A stretch of 64,000 nucleotides of DNA, from the sequence record NC_071039.1; one strand, given 5' to 3'. The notes under the pieces were generated by a model. That model did not search any database. It was given only the letters and a program-made list of their open reading frames with translations, and had not been told where the DNA came from. The stretch's first letter is position 1. The number at the start of each line of letters is the position of its first letter. A program made the translations under genes and the position numbers. Shown one piece after another: positions 6,473 to 64,000 of the stretch.

Positions 6473-7921
6473 ATGAAACTATTTGAAGTGTTTACTTTAT
6501 ATGAAGATAAAGCAGAACTGATTGTGAAAAATCAAGGACCCAACCTCCTTGCCGCTGCTAAAAATTATGGATCGAATATTCGTACGGCTGAAGAAATAAT
6601 GAATGTTCTTAAGAGTGCAGATCCCACATCTAATCAGAAATATTTGCAATGGATTACTAATAGATTTATTGCAGGTGAATTTAGATTAGAAGATGTTTAC
6701 AGAATTAAAAGTGAACTTACTAAGTTCGACCGAAATAAACGTTCTTTAGAAAAGAAAGACATAAACCAGTATAAGACTCTCGGTTCGTTATATGACGTAT
6801 TAGATTCGATAGGAAATGATACAACAGAACCAGTGTCTAATAAGCAAGCAAAGAAGCACGAATATAAAGCACAGCGGGACGAATTAATTTCGTCTGGGCA
6901 AGCAGATGTACTTTACAAAGGCCCAGAAGGTATGTTAGTTAATCCTAAGACTGAAGATGCCGCTAAATTCTTTGGAAAAGGAACACGCTGGTGCACCGCT
7001 GCAGACAACGATAATATGTTTGACTACTATAACGGCATGGGTCCGCTATACACTTGGTTAGGATCTGATGGAGTAAAATCCCAATTCCATCTAGAAACAG
7101 ACCAATGGATGGACGAAAGAGATGAACCACTCGATGACGAGGGCATGAAACGATTAATAAGTATCCCTGTTATTAAGAAGATGTACGACGATGGTATTAT
7201 TAAGTCTGAAAATAATATAACCTCCGGTGATTTTGACAGATCATATGACGATAGACTAACAGATGCTGGTTACGATAATTGGAGAGACAAGGAACAAAAA
7301 ATCTCCGATCATATTAGAAAGTATGGAATGTCTGAAAATCTTATCGATAAACTGGTTAGTAAGAATCCTCTCCTTCCATTATTCGTTTTGCCAACATGGA
7401 ACAAATACCCGGCAACGTCTGCCATGGACAACTATTTCCTTAAACTCTCTAAAGGCAAGCAACCGAAAGACTTCGGAGAAGGACAAGGACCGGGATTCTA
7501 TGAGGGAGACGTGCTCAATAGGCTGTGCGAATACATGGAGAGTACAAATTCTTGGAACAATACTATAGATGAAGCCTCATTTAATCTTGTTAGGAGATTA
7601 CTCGATGTCGATCCAAATTCCTATGTCCTTGGTAAGTTTATGGGCGAATCACCCGAAGATGCGAAGATAAAACAATATCTATTGTCTAACCTTCCCTATG
7701 CAGCAAAAACAATCGATGCAGGCGATTGGCCTGATCTGTTAGTGGCAGTGGGCAAGCAAGTACACAATGCTAAAACCCCCGAAGAGAAAAAACAATCTAT
7801 GGAATTAGCAAGAGAGGTTCTAACACATACCGGTAGTTCAGTTGCACACTGGTTTATTAAACTAATGAAAGAAACTGAAGCTGGCAGAGAATTTGAAGCA
7901 TCTCTGAATAAATACAAGTAA
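6473..7921 (+). CDS. Late protein with ADPT..KY..W and G.GT.WCT (PcfJ-like) region
   Basis: Start MKLFEVFTLYED after CTAAATA; motifs ADPTSNQKYLQW and FGKGTRWCTAA. Confidence 0.5.
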   Translation: MKLFEVFTLYEDKAELIVKNQGPNLLAAAKNYGSNIRTAEEIMNVLKSADPTSNQKYLQWITNRFIAGEFRLEDVYRIKSELTKFDRNKRSLEKKDINQYKTLGSLYDVLDSIGNDTTEPVSNKQAKKHEYKAQRDELISSGQADVLYKGPEGMLVNPKTEDAAKFFGKGTRWCTAADNDNMFDYYNGMGPLYTWLGSDGVKSQFHLETDQWMDERDEPLDDEGMKRLISIPVIKKMYDDGIIKSENNITSGDFDRSYDDRLTDAGYDNWRDKEQKISDHIRKYGMSENLIDKLVSKNPLLPLFVLPTWNKYPATSAMDNYFLKLSKGKQPKDFGEGQGPGFYEGDVLNRLCEYMESTNSWNNTIDEASFNLVRRLLDVDPNSYVLGKFMGESPEDAKIKQYLLSNLPYAAKTIDAGDWPDLLVAVGKQVHNAKTPEEKKQSMELAREVLTHTGSSVAHWFIKLMKETEAGREFEASLNKYK

Positions 7922-7939
7922 AATAGCAAGGTAAGAATT

Positions 7940-9430
7940 TTGATTAATTATAACAGAACTGCTAAAAAAATATTTTCTGTATTAAAAGGGCACAGCTATC
8001 GGGTTAAAATGTATGACCTAACAGGCAATGAAGTGATAGACCCAGAAAAAGCTCGTCGATTTTATGTTCAATATCCGAACATGATGATAACACTAGATGA
8101 AGACACTGGTGAAATTCGTATGAGCAAAAACAATAATATTTCTTTAACTGAATACGAAAGTACATTAGTTCAGTTAAAGAACATAGCAGTTCATTACATG
8201 CTAAATTTTACCTTGAAAGACTTCGGGAGAGAAATAACACCGAGAGATTTTGCATACCAAGCAAAAGTTAAAAAGGAAAAAGAAATGTCTAACGGATCTG
8301 TATCTGAATCTATATCTCCTCTAGTTGGTTCTAGAAAAACAAGTTATCAAACAATAGAAAATGTTAAAATACATGTAAAGCATAAGACACATGTCGACGA
8401 AGAGATTAGGGGAGCTCGTTCTAGAAATATTTCTGCAATTTTTATAGAACACTCGGGAGAAAGGTTTCGTTTTCCTCACAATAACTTAGTTGGTGCCCGC
8501 GCCATGGCAAGACATATACAGCAAGGCGGTAATCAATACGATTCGATCGGTTCTTATATAATAGAAAGCTGTGCTAACTATACTAAGTTAAGAGAATTTA
8601 TGAGATATATTCGTTCTAACAATCTTATAACAGAAGATAGCAACGATGTTATTGCTAATATTAAGGAAAGCATAGATAGTATAGCTACAGATTTAAAACG
8701 TCTATCTGGTGTAAATACCTACGGTATAGTAAAATCTAGGATCGAAGAAACGGAAGAAGCAGAATGCGATGTATCTGATGTAGATAAGTTTAAGGATATG
8801 TTTACTATTCGTAAGTTTGATGATAAGTTTACTGATGTTCTTCCTATAGTGAGTAAACTCGTTAAGGAAAAACAATCATATTTAAAGAAAATAGAAGAAG
8901 CAGTTTCTAAACAAATTTATATAGAGTCTATGCCTATTTTAGAAACTAATGCTATAATATATGAAAATCCTAATATTAAGTTAGGACATAGCTTACAAGA
9001 ACTTAGTTCTAGAATATTAGAAAATACATTATTAGCTAATTATATTTCGTCGATGGGATCTAAGCTAATAAAAGAAAATACTTTAAATAAATTCGAATGT
9101 TCTATAATTAAATCATTTTTTGAAAACGTTAGTGTTAAAAAAGCAAATACTAATCAAACTAATGGGTTATTTGCAGAATCGATTAACGAATTTGGGATAA
9201 ATATTCCTGACTTCCCGGATAATAATCCCTTTAGTAAAAATAAAGACAACAAATACAGTAATTCAGATTTAGATAAACACGCATCTGATCAAAAAGTAGA
9301 TGCAAATGACACTGTCTCTAAAATTGATTTTATTATAAGCAATAGTCGCGGAAGGTATAATGACAGAGAAAAATTACTAAAATTACCAGATGATGTTATT
9401 AACAGAATATATTCTAAAATTGCTAAATAA
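7940..9430 (+). CDS. Conserved virion-type protein, unknown function
   Basis: 496-aa ORF, TTG start. Confidence 0.55.
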   Translation: MINYNRTAKKIFSVLKGHSYRVKMYDLTGNEVIDPEKARRFYVQYPNMMITLDEDTGEIRMSKNNNISLTEYESTLVQLKNIAVHYMLNFTLKDFGREITPRDFAYQAKVKKEKEMSNGSVSESISPLVGSRKTSYQTIENVKIHVKHKTHVDEEIRGARSRNISAIFIEHSGERFRFPHNNLVGARAMARHIQQGGNQYDSIGSYIIESCANYTKLREFMRYIRSNNLITEDSNDVIANIKESIDSIATDLKRLSGVNTYGIVKSRIEETEEAECDVSDVDKFKDMFTIRKFDDKFTDVLPIVSKLVKEKQSYLKKIEEAVSKQIYIESMPILETNAIIYENPNIKLGHSLQELSSRILENTLLANYISSMGSKLIKENTLNKFECSIIKSFFENVSVKKANTNQTNGLFAESINEFGINIPDFPDNNPFSKNKDNKYSNSDLDKHASDQKVDANDTVSKIDFIISNSRGRYNDREKLLKLPDDVINRIYSKIAK

Positions 9431-9510
9431 AATTATTATAAAGATCATTGAAATGGATTCGAAATAAAATTAATTCTGTATACTTTGCATATTACACTAA
9501 AAATAAATGG

Positions 9511-9539
9511 TTGACAAATAGATAACTGCATTATATAAT
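9511..9539 (+). promoter_or_regulatory. Consensus sigma70 promoter for SSB gene
   Basis: TTGACA(9511-9516)-17 bp-TATAAT(9534-9539) with an A-rich UP region. Confidence 0.9.
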
Positions 9540-9552
9540 TACACCATAACTT

Positions 9553-9596
9553 AGTTTTGCAGCTAACCCGAGCAAAACTGTATTAAAAGGGTTTAG
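9553..9596 (+). promoter_or_regulatory. Candidate H-type pseudoknot in SSB mRNA leader
   Basis: Stem 1 AGTTTTGC 9553-9560 / GCAAAACT 9572-9579; loop AACCC 9565-9569 pairs with GGGTT 9589-9593. Confidence 0.65.
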
Positions 9597-9628
9597 GATA
9601 AAATAAAAAATATTAAGGATAATTCATT

Positions 9629-10615
9629 ATGGCTTCTCTTGCTGAACTACGTCAAAAATTAAAAGATCAAGAAACAAAACGTGGCACAAAATCATCTGGC
9701 AGTGCAGATAAAAGTAATTTCCCATTCTGGGACATGAATGAAAACGACAGTGCTACTGTAAGATTTCTTCCTGATGCAAACACTGATAATACCTTTTTCT
9801 GGGTAGAAAAACAACAAATTAAAATTCCATTTAGTGGCATTGTAGGTATGAATAGTAAACCTACAGTTGTTACTGTACCGTGTGTAGAAATGTGGGGGGA
9901 ATCTTGCCCTATTCATCAAGAAATCCGTCCGTGGTTTAAAGATCCTTCGTTAGAGAAATTAGCGCGTACTTATTGGAAGAAACGTTCTTATATTTTCCAA
10001 GGACTTGTTCGTAAGTCGCCTCTGGTAGAACAAGAACTACCAGAGAATCCTATTCGCAAATTTACATTCGGAAGTCAGATTTTTAATCTAGTTAAATCGT
10101 CTCTATTAGACCCCGAAATGGAAAACATTCCCACTGATTATTTAAATGGCACTGATTTCCAGATAACTAAATTAATGAAGGGCCAATATGCTGATTACGC
10201 TACATCTAAATGGGCAAGGAAAGAATCTTCGTTAACTGAAGAAGAATTCCAGGCAATCCAAACATATGGTCTGTATGATTTAAGTAAATTTTTACCTGCT
10301 AAACCTGATGCAGAAGCATTAGCTGCTATATTCGAGATGTTCGAAGAATCGGTAGAAGGTAAAGAATATGATCCGCAGCGTTGGGGGAAATACTATCGCC
10401 CTTACGGGGTTGAAGTTCCTACTAATACTTCCGTAAGTGTACCTGTATCTAAACCAGAACCTAAGACTACAGTATCTAGTTCTTCAGTTATAGAAGATGA
10501 TAACGATGATCTTCCTTGGGAAGATACTACTAAACCTGTAGAGCCTGTCAAATCTGCTTCTAATGCGCAAGATATAATTGCGCTCATCCGCGCCCGCCAA
10601 AACAGCGGCAACTAA
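9629..10615 (+). CDS. Single-stranded DNA-binding protein (T4 gp32-like)
   Basis: VRFLPD..., VPC.EMWGE.CP, YWKKRSY, YADY..SKW motifs; acidic C-terminal tail. Confidence 0.92.
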   Translation: MASLAELRQKLKDQETKRGTKSSGSADKSNFPFWDMNENDSATVRFLPDANTDNTFFWVEKQQIKIPFSGIVGMNSKPTVVTVPCVEMWGESCPIHQEIRPWFKDPSLEKLARTYWKKRSYIFQGLVRKSPLVEQELPENPIRKFTFGSQIFNLVKSSLLDPEMENIPTDYLNGTDFQITKLMKGQYADYATSKWARKESSLTEEEFQAIQTYGLYDLSKFLPAKPDAEALAAIFEMFEESVEGKEYDPQRWGKYYRPYGVEVPTNTSVSVPVSKPEPKTTVSSSSVIEDDNDDLPWEDTTKPVEPVKSASNAQDIIALIRARQNSGN

Positions 10616-10618
10616 ATA

Positions 10619-10648
10619 GGGAGAGGGGATCGCTGATCCCCTCTCTTT
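10619..10648 (+). terminator. Intrinsic terminator
   Basis: GAGAGGGGATC-gct-GATCCCCTCTC-TTT. Confidence 0.8.
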
Positions 10649-10721
10649 AATATAACCTAAAATAGCCAAAAAGTACAACTACAATGTTGGAAGGACGGCA
10701 GTATTATAAAAAGGACATTTT

Positions 10722-10967
10722 ATGACAAAACCATTCGATATTTCTAAATTTAGAAAAGATATTACTAAAAGTATTACAGGCATTAGTACAGGATTTAATG
10801 ACCCAACTATTTGGATTAGTACCGGCAACTATACTCTTAATTATCTCATTAGTAGCGACTTTAATAAAGGCGTACCTATGGGTAAAGTAACTATGTTTGC
10901 CGGCGAGTCGGGTTGTTTGCCTGAAACTGCTAAAGTGAAAATTAGACTATCTAAGAAGCAATCTTAA
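10722..10967 (+). CDS. uvsX: UvsX/RecA N-extein (64 aa) fused to a 17-aa split-intein N fragment
   Basis: RecA-like ISTGN..LN..IS...GVP.GKVT.FAGESG, then intein block A CLPETAKVKIRL from 10914; TAA stop. Confidence 0.9.
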   Translation: MTKPFDISKFRKDITKSITGISTGFNDPTIWISTGNYTLNYLISSDFNKGVPMGKVTMFAGESGCLPETAKVKIRLSKKQS

Positions 10968-10976
10968 CTGTCCAGT

Positions 10977-11016
10977 GTCTCCGTCGAGGATAAATACTTT
11001 TATCTAAAACGGAGAC
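10977..11016 (+). promoter_or_regulatory. SD-sequestering hairpin with internal late promoter
   Basis: GTCTCCGT 10977-10984 / ACGGAGAC 11009-11016 covers GGAG; inner GATAAA/TTTATC stem; ATAAATA at 10990-10996. Confidence 0.8.
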
Positions 11017-11019
11017 TTT

Positions 11020-12453
11020 ATGGGAAATTACAATGTTCTTTCTACAAAAAACTTTAAGAAGCTATGTAATGAGTTAAACATAGTAACGATATCAGAAAAG
11101 TACATTTCTGATATACGTAAGATAGAAGATTCTGCTAAGAGCAAAGTGGATTCTGCATCTCAGCGTATGATATTAACTATGATAACTGTGAAAGTTCCCG
11201 ACTTATATGATGCATATAACAGATACTATCAGCTCAGAACAGATGGTATTAGTACAAAAACTCAAGACAGTATTTCTTATATTTTTGGAAAAGACTTCCT
11301 CGAATCTGTTAATTTACTAATCAGTAATAGATATAAAACTGCATTCCGTAAAGGAATGACAGTGGAAGAGGCATTTATAACACGTAATAAAGACTTTTCC
11401 AATAATGGTGTGTATTATAACCAGATGACTGATAAGCAAAAGAAACGTTTATCATTATTGCTTAGTGTGTATACACCAGAAAGGTTGGAGTTTTATAAAA
11501 AGACAATTTCGTTTTTTATTAAGTTAGATTTGACTAATTATGCAGGAAGAATGAAAAGACTGATGAAACTGGGATCTAGTACGTCTTTATATGCTAGCGT
11601 ATTACGGTATGGTAAATCTGTCGGAAAAAGCACACATTCATCTGTATCTGCGGTAAAGAGAAACTATTTGCCTACTTCGATACAATATTGGATGGCAAAG
11701 GGGTTTGATGAAGATACTGCATTAGTGAAGATAAACGAACATCAACAGAAAGCAAGTGCCATGTCTTCCAAAAAACTAAAAGGCACTAGCGAATACTCTG
11801 TTCGATCAGTTGCATATTGGATTAAAAACGGGTATAGCGAAGAAGAGGCAAAAGGGAAAGTATCTAATATACAGAATACTTGGAAAAATGTATCTCAAGA
11901 AGAGCGTGATCGAAGAATAGAATCGTGGATGACTACAATGAGTCTTAAAACAGACGAGGAGAAATCTTTGATAAACCTTAAAAAAACTCACAGCCCGGAA
12001 GGGATAATGGCAAGGACAAATTGCGATTATGATATTGCATTTAAGCAAAGCGTTGATTTTTTTAAGAAACGAAATAATTCTTCTAAAGTATCTCAAGAAC
12101 TATTTTGGGGAATTGCCGAGGATATCGATACCGATGGAGTTTACTTTTCTGAACTAAACTACGAATACCCTGTTATGGGGAAAATAGTAGATTTCTATGA
12201 TTCTAAAAGCAAAACAGTAATCGAATTTTATGGAAACTTTTGGCATGCAGATAGTACATATACTGATGACACACTGATATATGGAAAAACTGCTAAAGAA
12301 ATAAGAGAATCGGACATTTACAGAGAAACGTTAATTAGATCATCTGATTTGGTTAGTGATTTTATAGTAGTTTGGGAAAAGGACTTTAGGAAGAATCCGA
12401 AAGAAACAATTAAAAATTTAGTTAATATTTTAAATAATAAAAGGAAATTTTAA
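11020..12453 (+). mobile_element. Free-standing homing endonuclease (Vsr-like/EDxHD-type) between split-intein halves
   Basis: C-terminal VDFYD...VIEFYGNFWHAD...IVVWEKDF; repeated YW..KG..E..A modules; position inside recA. Confidence 0.8.
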
Positions 12454-17982: not shown

Positions 17983-18234
17983 ATGAATTTTTATCAAGAC
18001 GGAATTTATATAAAATTAGATGCAGATTTAAATGAACAATCGAACTTATTTAAATTAAAATCAGAATTATATGTACATTCGTATCCTACCCCTGATTTTT
18101 ATAGATATACCAAAAATGGTAAAACCATGTTAGGAGTAGTATATATCGGTTCATTAGAAACTGTATTTCTTAATATTATTAGCGGAGACTTTGACAAAGA
18201 AAAATTTTGTGCTATAATAGAAAAATACAAATAA
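17983..18234 (+). CDS. Hypothetical protein
   Basis: 83-aa ORF in operon. Confidence 0.5.
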   Translation: MNFYQDGIYIKLDADLNEQSNLFKLKSELYVHSYPTPDFYRYTKNGKTMLGVVYIGSLETVFLNIISGDFDKEKFCAIIEKYK

Positions 18235-21854: not shown

Positions 21855-21883
21855 TTGACAACGAAAAACGTGCATGCTATAAT
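21855..21883 (+). promoter_or_regulatory. Consensus sigma70 promoter (extended -10) for primase
   Basis: TTGACA 21855-21860, 17 bp, TG-c-TATAAT 21878-21883. Confidence 0.85.
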
Positions 21884-34205: not shown

Positions 34206-34234
34206 TTGACATATTTATAGCCTTATATTATAAT
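34206..34234 (+). promoter_or_regulatory. Consensus sigma70 promoter
   Basis: TTGACA 34206-34211, 17 bp, TATAAT 34229-34234. Confidence 0.85.
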
Positions 34235-62467: not shown

Positions 62468-62507
62468 AAAAGGGCACTTGACAAGTGCCCTTTTTTTGCC
62501 ATATAAT
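62468..62507 (+). terminator. Terminator with embedded -35 of next promoter
   Basis: AAAAGGGCACTTG-a-CAAGTGCCCTTTT; TTGACA 62478-62483, 18 bp, TATAAT 62502-62507. Confidence 0.8.
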
Positions 62508-63532: not shown

Positions 63533-64000
63533 TAGAAAAGAAATAACTATATCAACAGGCATAAATATCCTTTTGCAAGGGAACCAGCTGGGAGATCCAC
63601 TCTTTGTTGACAACGAAGACATAAACAAGTATAATATGCACGTAGAACAAGTATTAGGGTTGCATAAACTTAATACGACGAAACACTTAACTTGTTCTGT
63701 TGATGAATTTCATGAAAAAATGTCTTCAGAATGGTTTATGCCACCGGAATTTAAAAATATAGATATAGATTCTTTTATATTAAATTTATGTGACACTGAT
63801 GCACAAAAAGAAAGAGTATTAATGGAACTGAAACTCTTTCAAGAACGCGGTTTATACAATATGCTAAGATTTATGATATATTTTGTATCATATATGAGGG
63901 AAAATTGCCTTATCTGGGGTGTGGGTCGCGGGTCTAGTGTTGCATCTTATGTATTATTTTTAATAGGCGTGCATAAAGTAGATTCACTAAAATATAATTT
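63516..64000 (+). CDS. DNA polymerase III alpha (DnaE)-like N-proximal fragment, 3' partial (not in ORF track)
   Basis: Translated by hand: MNDKYNRKEI...RV.MEL.LF...I...MREN..IWGVGRGSSVASYVLFLIGVHKVDSLKYN, matching DnaE GxGRGS...DPL. Confidence 0.8.
   Translation, partial: MNDKYNRKEITISTGINILLQGNQLGDPLFVDNEDINKYNMHVEQVLGLHKLNTTKHLTCSVDEFHEKMSSEWFMPPEFKNIDIDSFILNLCDTDAQKERVLMELKLFQERGLYNMLRFMIYFVSYMRENCLIWGVGRGSSVASYVLFLIGVHKVDSLKYN

Follow-up and report, generated by a model that had tools for sequence, protein, structure and literature searches.

A hairpin-capped, otherwise open leader precedes the gp32-type single-stranded DNA-binding protein gene of the Pseudomonas jumbo phage PA5oct

The DNA analysed in this work, a stretch of 64,000 nucleotides from sequence record NC_071039.1 (hereafter the window), belongs to the Pseudomonas jumbo phage vB_PaeM_PA5oct (MK797984; Arenbergviridae, Wroclawvirus), a window position being the record position minus 124000. 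On its plus strand, the gene for a single-stranded DNA-binding protein (SSB) appears as a self-contained and very highly expressed unit composed of a promoter (9511-9539), an 83-nt leader, the coding sequence and a terminator (10621-10645). The leader is predicted to fold into a single hairpin close to the mRNA 5' end and to stay open from there to the start codon. In the explanation that we favour, and that we consider as a whole to have an even chance of being correct, the hairpin (9552-9580), located 3-6 nt from the 5' end, would most likely guard the mRNA from 5'-end-dependent decay and would in addition set the 5' boundary of a regulatory tract. This tract (9581-9628), kept unfolded and carrying a duplicated AGGAUAA, would offer open access to ribosomes; once single-stranded DNA is saturated, surplus SSB would bind the tract cooperatively and cover the ribosome site, by analogy with gp32 of phages T4 and RB69. 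Stabilisation of the mRNA by the hairpin seems to us about evenly balanced between right and wrong, and repression by SSB of its own translation, for which the argument is one of analogy, is held to be somewhat less likely than not. The elements concerned are the following.

9511-9539, plus strand: sigma70-type promoter TTGACA-17-TATAAT, 12/12 match, predicted +1 near 9546
9552-9580, plus strand: predicted 5'-proximal RNA hairpin, stem of 9 bp including one G-U pair, A/C-rich loop of 11 nt, from minimum free energy (MFE) and centroid folding
9563-9596, plus strand: putative stem 2 of a pseudoknot, 9565-9569 with 9589-9593 and optionally 9563-9564 with 9595-9596, from complementarity
9581-9628, plus strand: A/U-rich tract predicted to be unstructured, with AGGATAA twice, from MFE, z score and repeat count
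9605-9610, plus strand: A-run whose length (6, 7 or 8 A) is the leader's only polymorphism, from the alignment of 10 genomes
9629-10615, plus strand: SSB of the gp32 family, 328 aa, from Pfam PF08804, AlphaFold/Foldseek and sister annotations
10621-10645, plus strand: GC-rich terminator hairpin of 11 bp, from a terminator scan and the fall in contig depth

An initial reading of this DNA made from its letters alone (the sequence-only reading) had proposed a consensus sigma70 promoter with a transcription start near 9546. This is borne out by the perfect 12/12 sequence and by a step in the depth of contigs from RNA sequencing (RNA-seq), which suggests activity. The -35 box TTGACA (9511-9516) and the -10 box TATAAT (9534-9539) are separated by a 17-nt spacer and place +1 near A9546. 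Perfect promoters of this kind are found six times in the window, all on the plus strand, against 0.18 expected, and PA5oct needs the RNA polymerase of its host, with 32 TTGAC/TATAATA promoters reported (PMC7318152). When Logan contigs from four RNA-seq runs, all of the same transcriptome study (2020), were placed on 7900-11100, the summed word depth was ~1e2-7e2 upstream of the SSB promoter, rose to 1e5 within the bin 9505-9611 and attained 3e5-6e5 across the coding sequence (runs X1 and X2). The rise at the promoter is thus more than 1000-fold; it is followed by a 10- to 40-fold drop after 10575, and the low-depth contigs from upstream stop at 9543 and 9559. Such a step would be expected if the promoter is active and very strong and the SSB mRNA mostly monocistronic. 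The terminator was listed by the scan on the minus strand, the plus strand holding the same palindrome followed by TTTAATAT. At the other end of the unit, no terminator was predicted between the virion-protein stop (9430) and the SSB promoter (9431-9510), and contigs of runs X3 and X4 cross the virion-protein/SSB junction, so that the SSB leader is probably also present in read-through transcripts at some stages, as in T4. Downstream of the other five perfect promoters, the leaders measure ~0-25 nt and lack a hairpin of this kind at the 5' end, which makes the long leader specific to SSB in the window. It holds no upstream open reading frame, since there is no ATG at 9546-9628.

The 8-bp stem that had been described in the leader (9553-9560/9572-9579) is present, and a U9552-G9580 pair brings it to 9 bp around a loop spanning 9561-9571. 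The resulting hairpin is both the MFE and the centroid structure of the leader, begins at a distance of 6 nt from the predicted +1 and occurs once in the window. It also folds better than chance, the first 40 nt of the transcript having a z score of -2.7. The z score of the whole leader is +1.47 because of the open remainder at 9581-9640. Indeed, this remainder has an MFE of -0.2 kcal/mol and a z score of +2.36 versus dinucleotide shuffles, structure being scarcer there than expected by chance, and the unstructured A/U stretch announced before the ATG at 9629 was thereby recovered as a tract of 48 nt. It consists of 24 A, 16 U, 7 G and 1 C, which amounts to an A+U content of 83% (40/48 nt), or 78% if 9581-9640 is considered. 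AGGATAA is found in it at 9595-9601 and 9616-9622, 21 nt apart, and the second copy is the Shine-Dalgarno (SD) sequence; the probability of a GG-containing repeat of at least 7 nt is 0.07. The tract also contains UAAA three times and UUAA twice (P 0.18 given its composition). An Rfam scan of 9000-11000 with E values up to 10 returned nothing relevant, and an IMG/VR scan for the PA5oct stem with a free 11-nt loop returned 25 loci, all of them unrelated. As a separate observation, Illumina adapter sequence stands directly before 9561, 9567 and 9578 in RNA-seq contigs (two runs; one contig each), and these positions in the hairpin loop and 3' arm could be ends of loop-cleavage fragments or an artefact.

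Comparison within the genus is of limited use for the folding. Nine further Wroclawvirus genomes, 98.5-99% identical over 2 kb, form with PA5oct a set of 10 in which not one substitution lies between the -35 box and the ATG. Only the A-run differs, which shows that spacing within the open tract is free to vary, and four variable positions are located directly upstream of the promoter. Because the sister leaders carry no substitution, they hold no information on pairing or covariation. The distant set consisted of 160 metagenomic loci with SSBs 50-60% identical and of eight cultured jumbo phages; no closer SSB relatives were found in IMG/VR and JGI metagenomes, where the best identity is at most 60%. 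After removal of redundancy, 108 SSB leaders had a promoter matching at 10/12 positions or more; among them, the untranslated region has a median length of 63 nt and the 5' structure begins no more than 8 nt from the predicted +1 in 97 cases; the first 40 nt fold with a median z score of -1.6, which falls below -2 in 39 of them.

One subgroup consists of 40 distinct leaders anchored on the word CAUGGC, 38 of which have a hairpin that ends 4-6 nt before this word in 36/38 cases. As alignment by MAFFT followed by RNAalifold misaligned the stems and gave no pairs, a covariance-model alignment of 26 leaders was used in its place. In this alignment, which is fitted to the model and so favours structure, 98.4% of the cells are paired and compensatory changes on both sides are seen in 7/8 pairs, with a covariation score of 0.63 against 0.21 for shuffles (0/500) and at most 0.12 for slid partners. 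Covariation across related SSB leaders, which the sequence-only reading had named as one check of its proposal, is accordingly found for the hairpin in this one subgroup, whereas the second stem of that proposal has no counterpart in distant leaders. As judged from the leader sequences, the structured element that is conserved in the clade is the hairpin, not the pseudoknot.

These hairpins also bear on the idea that, at the DNA level, the inverted repeat spanning +7 to +35 serves as an operator where a dimeric repressor would act as a transcriptional roadblock. The PA5oct palindrome folds about equally well on both strands (-7.9 vs -8.3), as a DNA site might, and another subgroup of relatives carries a DNA-like ACACAG-N5-CTGTGT overlapping the promoter. 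However, the CAUGGC-subgroup hairpins are more stable in the sense orientation in 23 cases and in the antisense orientation in 7 (Wilcoxon P 0.004), and G-U pairs are present in 20/40. The better folding of the sense strand, together with these G-U pairs, points to selection on RNA rather than on DNA. Since hairpin position in the relatives is moreover tied to the transcript 5' end, we regard a DNA operator as extremely improbable.

The sequence-only reading had gone further than a hairpin: the loop AACCC would pair with a downstream GGGTT, and SSB would nucleate on the resulting H-type pseudoknot (9552-9560/9572-9580 plus 9565-9569/9589-9593) and spread over the A/U tract in the manner of T4 gene 32. 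The complementarity is as it was described. AACCC at 9565-9569 matches GGGUU at 9589-9593, and the duplex reaches -8.0 kcal/mol if it is extended by U9564-A9595 and C9563-G9596 around a bulged U9594. With loops of 4, 2 and 8 nt, the pseudoknot seems adequate on steric grounds, as estimated rather than computed, and a crude sum in the style of Dirks and Pierce gives -12.1 kcal/mol for the pseudoknot versus -8.5 kcal/mol for the hairpin alone. The pseudoknot would occupy ~-77 to -36 relative to the AUG, a placement comparable to the one in T4, where the pseudoknot region is found 67 nt before the start codon. Besides, closing a loop of 11 nt with a stem of 9 bp costs +5.1 kcal/mol, a price that makes some partner for the loop probable. 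On the other side, dinucleotide-preserving shuffles of the downstream tract yield at least 5 Watson-Crick pairs with a probability of 0.22 and an equal or better duplex energy with a probability of 0.12. These values become 0.05 and 0.04, respectively, if loop and tract are both shuffled, and since the pairing had been found by looking for it, the shuffle results are not evidence for stem 2, which does no better than chance.

The relatives do not come to the rescue of this stem. The sister leaders, free of substitutions as they are, leave no room for covariation, and none of the ~26 distant relatives with loops of at least 5 nt shows a complement of its loop downstream at P <0.1. Terminal loops are as short as 3-4 nt in 22/38 hairpins of the CAUGGC subgroup. 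Two relatives with large loops containing AACCC (L168 and L175) have no GGGUU within 400 nt downstream, so that a shared loop motif would point to a trans-acting factor instead of stem 2. In the same vein, the 12-15-nt loops of relatives with AACACAGA or AACCCAGA resemble the PA5oct loop CUAACCCGA, and no complement to them was found in the relatives' leaders, two isolated matches lying well inside the coding region. A pseudoknot is not universal even in T4-type phages, RB49 being without one. The AACCC/GGGUU pairing may thus form in PA5oct, and no evidence requires it; we consider both a functional stem 2 and the nucleation of SSB on a pseudoknot to be unlikely. What stands of the proposed T4-like leader is its layout, a 5' structure followed by an unstructured A/U tract over the ribosome site.

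The protein encoded downstream is consistent with such a layout. The gene at 9629-10615 is EST35_0207, which the PA5oct record labels only 'structural protein', its counterpart being labelled SSB in the annotations of sister phages. Its identification as a gp32-type SSB is upheld by a match to Pfam PF08804 (38.4 bits for a cutoff of 26.8, E 1.7e-9) and by structure prediction. An AlphaFold model built from 34 clade sequences (mean predicted local distance difference test score, pLDDT, of 74.6) was compared with the PDB by Foldseek, and the gp32 cores of RB69 (2a1k, E 7.5e-8) and T4 (1gpc, E 9.5e-8) are its only significant matches, with a probability of 1.00. As a phmmer search of PDB sequences did not find gp32, the relation is visible only by the Pfam profile and the fold. 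According to this model, the EST35_0207 product has the gp32 core fold. At the N-terminal end of the model, a helix leads into a basic segment of low confidence, and towards the other end an acidic disordered region (265-312) precedes a conserved C-terminal helix. In the 34 clade SSBs, the consensus DILAMIRARQ of this helix (residues 313-326) is kept, and C85 and C93 are invariant in a CxxxxxxxCP segment (residues 85-96) in which H96 is not.

In T4, the gene 32 operator consists of a ~28-nt pseudoknot, on which cooperative gp32 binding nucleates, and of >40 nt of unstructured RNA that covers the ribosome site and contains UUAAA/UAAA units. The region of the pseudoknot is 67 nt upstream of the start codon, an RNase E cleavage at -71 is listed in a review, the operator has diverged in RB69, and in RB49 no pseudoknot can be recognised (PMC535899, PMC3014915). 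Of all T4 messages, that of gene 32 is the most stable (PMC3014915). The PA5oct leader resembles the operators of T4, T2 and RB69 by the gp32 fold of its product, by a structure near the mRNA 5' end (the RNase E cut being close to the pseudoknot in T4) and by the ~35-48 nt of open A/U-rich RNA, including the ribosome site, that follow it. A few UAAA/UUAA units are present in it, but they are not enriched. It differs by the absence of sequence similarity, by an unsupported stem 2 in a clade that keeps a plain hairpin, and by a 5' end that originates from a dedicated sigma70 promoter and not from RNase E processing.

Known 5'-terminal stem-loops that stabilise bacterial and phage mRNAs include those of the ompA leader and of T4 gene 32. 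The SSB mRNA, which is very abundant, is reminiscent of these stabilised messages in having a stable hairpin at most a few nucleotides from where its 5' end is predicted, at a position tied to the 5' end across relatives, although 3-6 unpaired 5' nucleotides and an 11-nt loop are atypical of minimal stabilisers. A third comparison is offered by the hairpin operator of T4 gene 43, which encodes the DNA polymerase (PMC3014915). Here too, a protein of replication could bind its own message ahead of the ribosome site by recognising the specific loop of a hairpin, and one subgroup of relatives combines an invariant 12-nt loop with a covarying stem. The T4 hairpin abuts the ribosome site, whereas that of PA5oct is located 48 nt upstream. 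Nothing on the control of the SSB leader is found in the PA5oct paper (PMC7318152), and our search of the literature was not aimed at jumbo-phage SSB leaders generally.

The distant leaders display a further feature close to the start codon. AGGCAAC (78 times), TAGGCA (77 times) and CATGGCA (40 times) accumulate in the bin from -100 to -1, with at most 10 occurrences in any other 100-nt bin, and a GG-containing direct repeat of at least 7 nt is found in 93/138 SSB leaders. The GG-words ATAGGCAAC, CATGGCA and TAGGCTAATA are present in 2-4 copies per leader and are lineage-specific (L002-L081, L099-L178). The repeats keep to one strand and hardly occur outside the SSB leader, apart from a small peak around the start of uvsX, and the GG-word itself occupies the SD position in some lineages. 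They may be standby or SD-like ribosome sites, or lineage-specific recognition words comparable to the UUAAA/UAAA units of T4.

The whole leader might also be an expression element and nothing else, with a hairpin that stabilises the mRNA and an open A-rich leader whose two AGGAUAA copies maximise ribosome loading, without any feedback by SSB. Such a reading would be in line with the extreme abundance of the SSB transcript, with an unstructured ribosome site, with the clade-wide recurrence of repeats that are SD-like or contain GG in the last 100 nt of SSB leaders and with the repeated word found at the SD position in some relatives. It has to face the autogenous control of gp32-type SSBs that was experimentally shown in T4 and RB69, a leader of 83 nt that is far longer than translation by itself requires and than those of other PA5oct early genes (~0-25 nt), and the terminal segments kept in the PA5oct SSB, which we take to mediate cooperativity and regulation in T4 gp32. 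On these grounds, we hold an expression element without feedback to be rather unlikely, but the most serious of the alternatives.

Several points weigh against the favoured combination of a protective hairpin and an SSB-sensitive tract. The start of the SSB transcript is a predicted one, as Logan contigs cannot fix transcript ends and the depth step is coarse. A stretch of 6 unpaired nucleotides before the hairpin is at the upper edge of what 5' stabilisers of enterobacterial mRNAs display. In the 108 leaders, the tract that follows the hairpin has a median z score of -0.36, positive in 45/108; it is therefore not generally unstructured in the relatives, and a T4-like lattice is not clade-wide. 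Finally, the covariance model R1, built on the relatives, gives no match to the PA5oct hairpin, and hence a shared layout is claimed here and not homology of the hairpins.

The duplicated word of PA5oct may also be read as a protein-binding site of another kind. Its AGGAU boxes (9595-9599 and 9616-9620) would then be the target of a dimeric GGA-binding repressor, either a host RsmA/RsmN protein of the CsrA family or a phage factor. The duplication (P 0.07) would agree with this view; the 21-nt spacing and the overlap with the SD sequence fit the geometry of CsrA/RsmA sites as we understand it, and AGGAAG or AAGGAG is found between the arms of the first hairpin in the RaK2-like phages XbC2, CBB and fHe-Yen9-04. 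Yet AGGA is the plain SD core, AGGATAA is not enriched in the window (14 occurrences vs 16.8 expected), neither PA5oct box is in a predicted hairpin loop and the repeats of most relatives are of the GGC type and not GGA. A repressor of this type is in our view very improbable.

A broader proposal can be made for the clade. SSB genes of PA5oct-, RaK2- and Atu_ph07-like phages would possess a dedicated translational operator in which a promoter of host type is followed by a 5' hairpin that covaries and by a lineage-specific GG-word (AUAGGCAAC, CAUGGCA or UAGGCUAAUA; AGGAUAA in PA5oct) in 2-4 copies, the last of them coinciding with the ribosome site or adjoining it. The cognate SSB would read these words and co-diverge with them as T4 and RB69 did, and PA5oct alone would have added a pseudoknot stem. 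This scenario is speculative and we think it more probably wrong than right by a wide measure. As for the favoured explanation, autoregulation in PA5oct would, if true, be a hairpin-based version of the known gp32-type control. If a distant clade of cultured and uncultured jumbo phages indeed keeps a structure and an open tract before a gp32-fold SSB, control by self-titration against single-stranded DNA would be both ancient and general, and the contrast between hairpin and pseudoknot would reveal what a nucleation element must provide. If only the stabilising role is right, the finding is an ordinary one. The question is directly testable, as PA5oct is cultured, its transcriptome has been mapped and its host is genetically tractable.

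Regarding the surroundings of the gene, the order virion protein, ~200-nt gap, SSB and UvsX/RecA is the same in RaK2, 121Q, CBB, XbC2, fHe-Yen9-04, Atu_ph07 and Phosso. The other perfect TTGACA-N16-18-TATAAT promoters of the window are located on the plus strand at 18191-18218, 21855-21883, 34206-34234, 62478-62507 and 63607-63635, and those ending at 21883 and 34234 may yield leaderless or near-leaderless mRNAs. Another sequence, GATAAATA, is found 25-60 nt before the start codons at 2656, 10989, 24365, 30278, 30723, 32306 and 47967; 9/10 of its occurrences are on the plus strand and it is probably the late-promoter box of PA5oct. A late promoter within the SSB leader was considered and rejected, only GATAAAATA being present there (9597-9605).

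Some of the distant relatives organise the region upstream of SSB differently. ACACAG-N5/6-CTGTGT abuts a TATAAT/TAAAAT box at ~-95 from the SSB ATG in L016, L020, L029, L036, L108, L110, L120 and others, and resembles a DNA operator or a promoter-overlapping hairpin. The phages XbC2, CBB and fHe-Yen9-04 (L096-L098) have, besides the AGGAAG or AAGGAG between the arms of their first hairpin, two tandem extended -10 promoters TGTGGTATAAT in the 225 nt before the SSB start and a true SD sequence, AAGGAA, in the loop of a 4-5-bp hairpin right before the AUG. In another set (L027, L035, L037, L041, L043, L052, L056, L058 and L068-L076), a sigma70-like promoter lies inside a terminator-like hairpin at ~-130 to -85; the spacer holds the 5' arm AAGCGCA, the loop holds the -10 box TATACT, and a T-run comes after the 3' arm TGCGCTT, an arrangement that recalls the promoter/stem-loop cassettes of T4-type phages.

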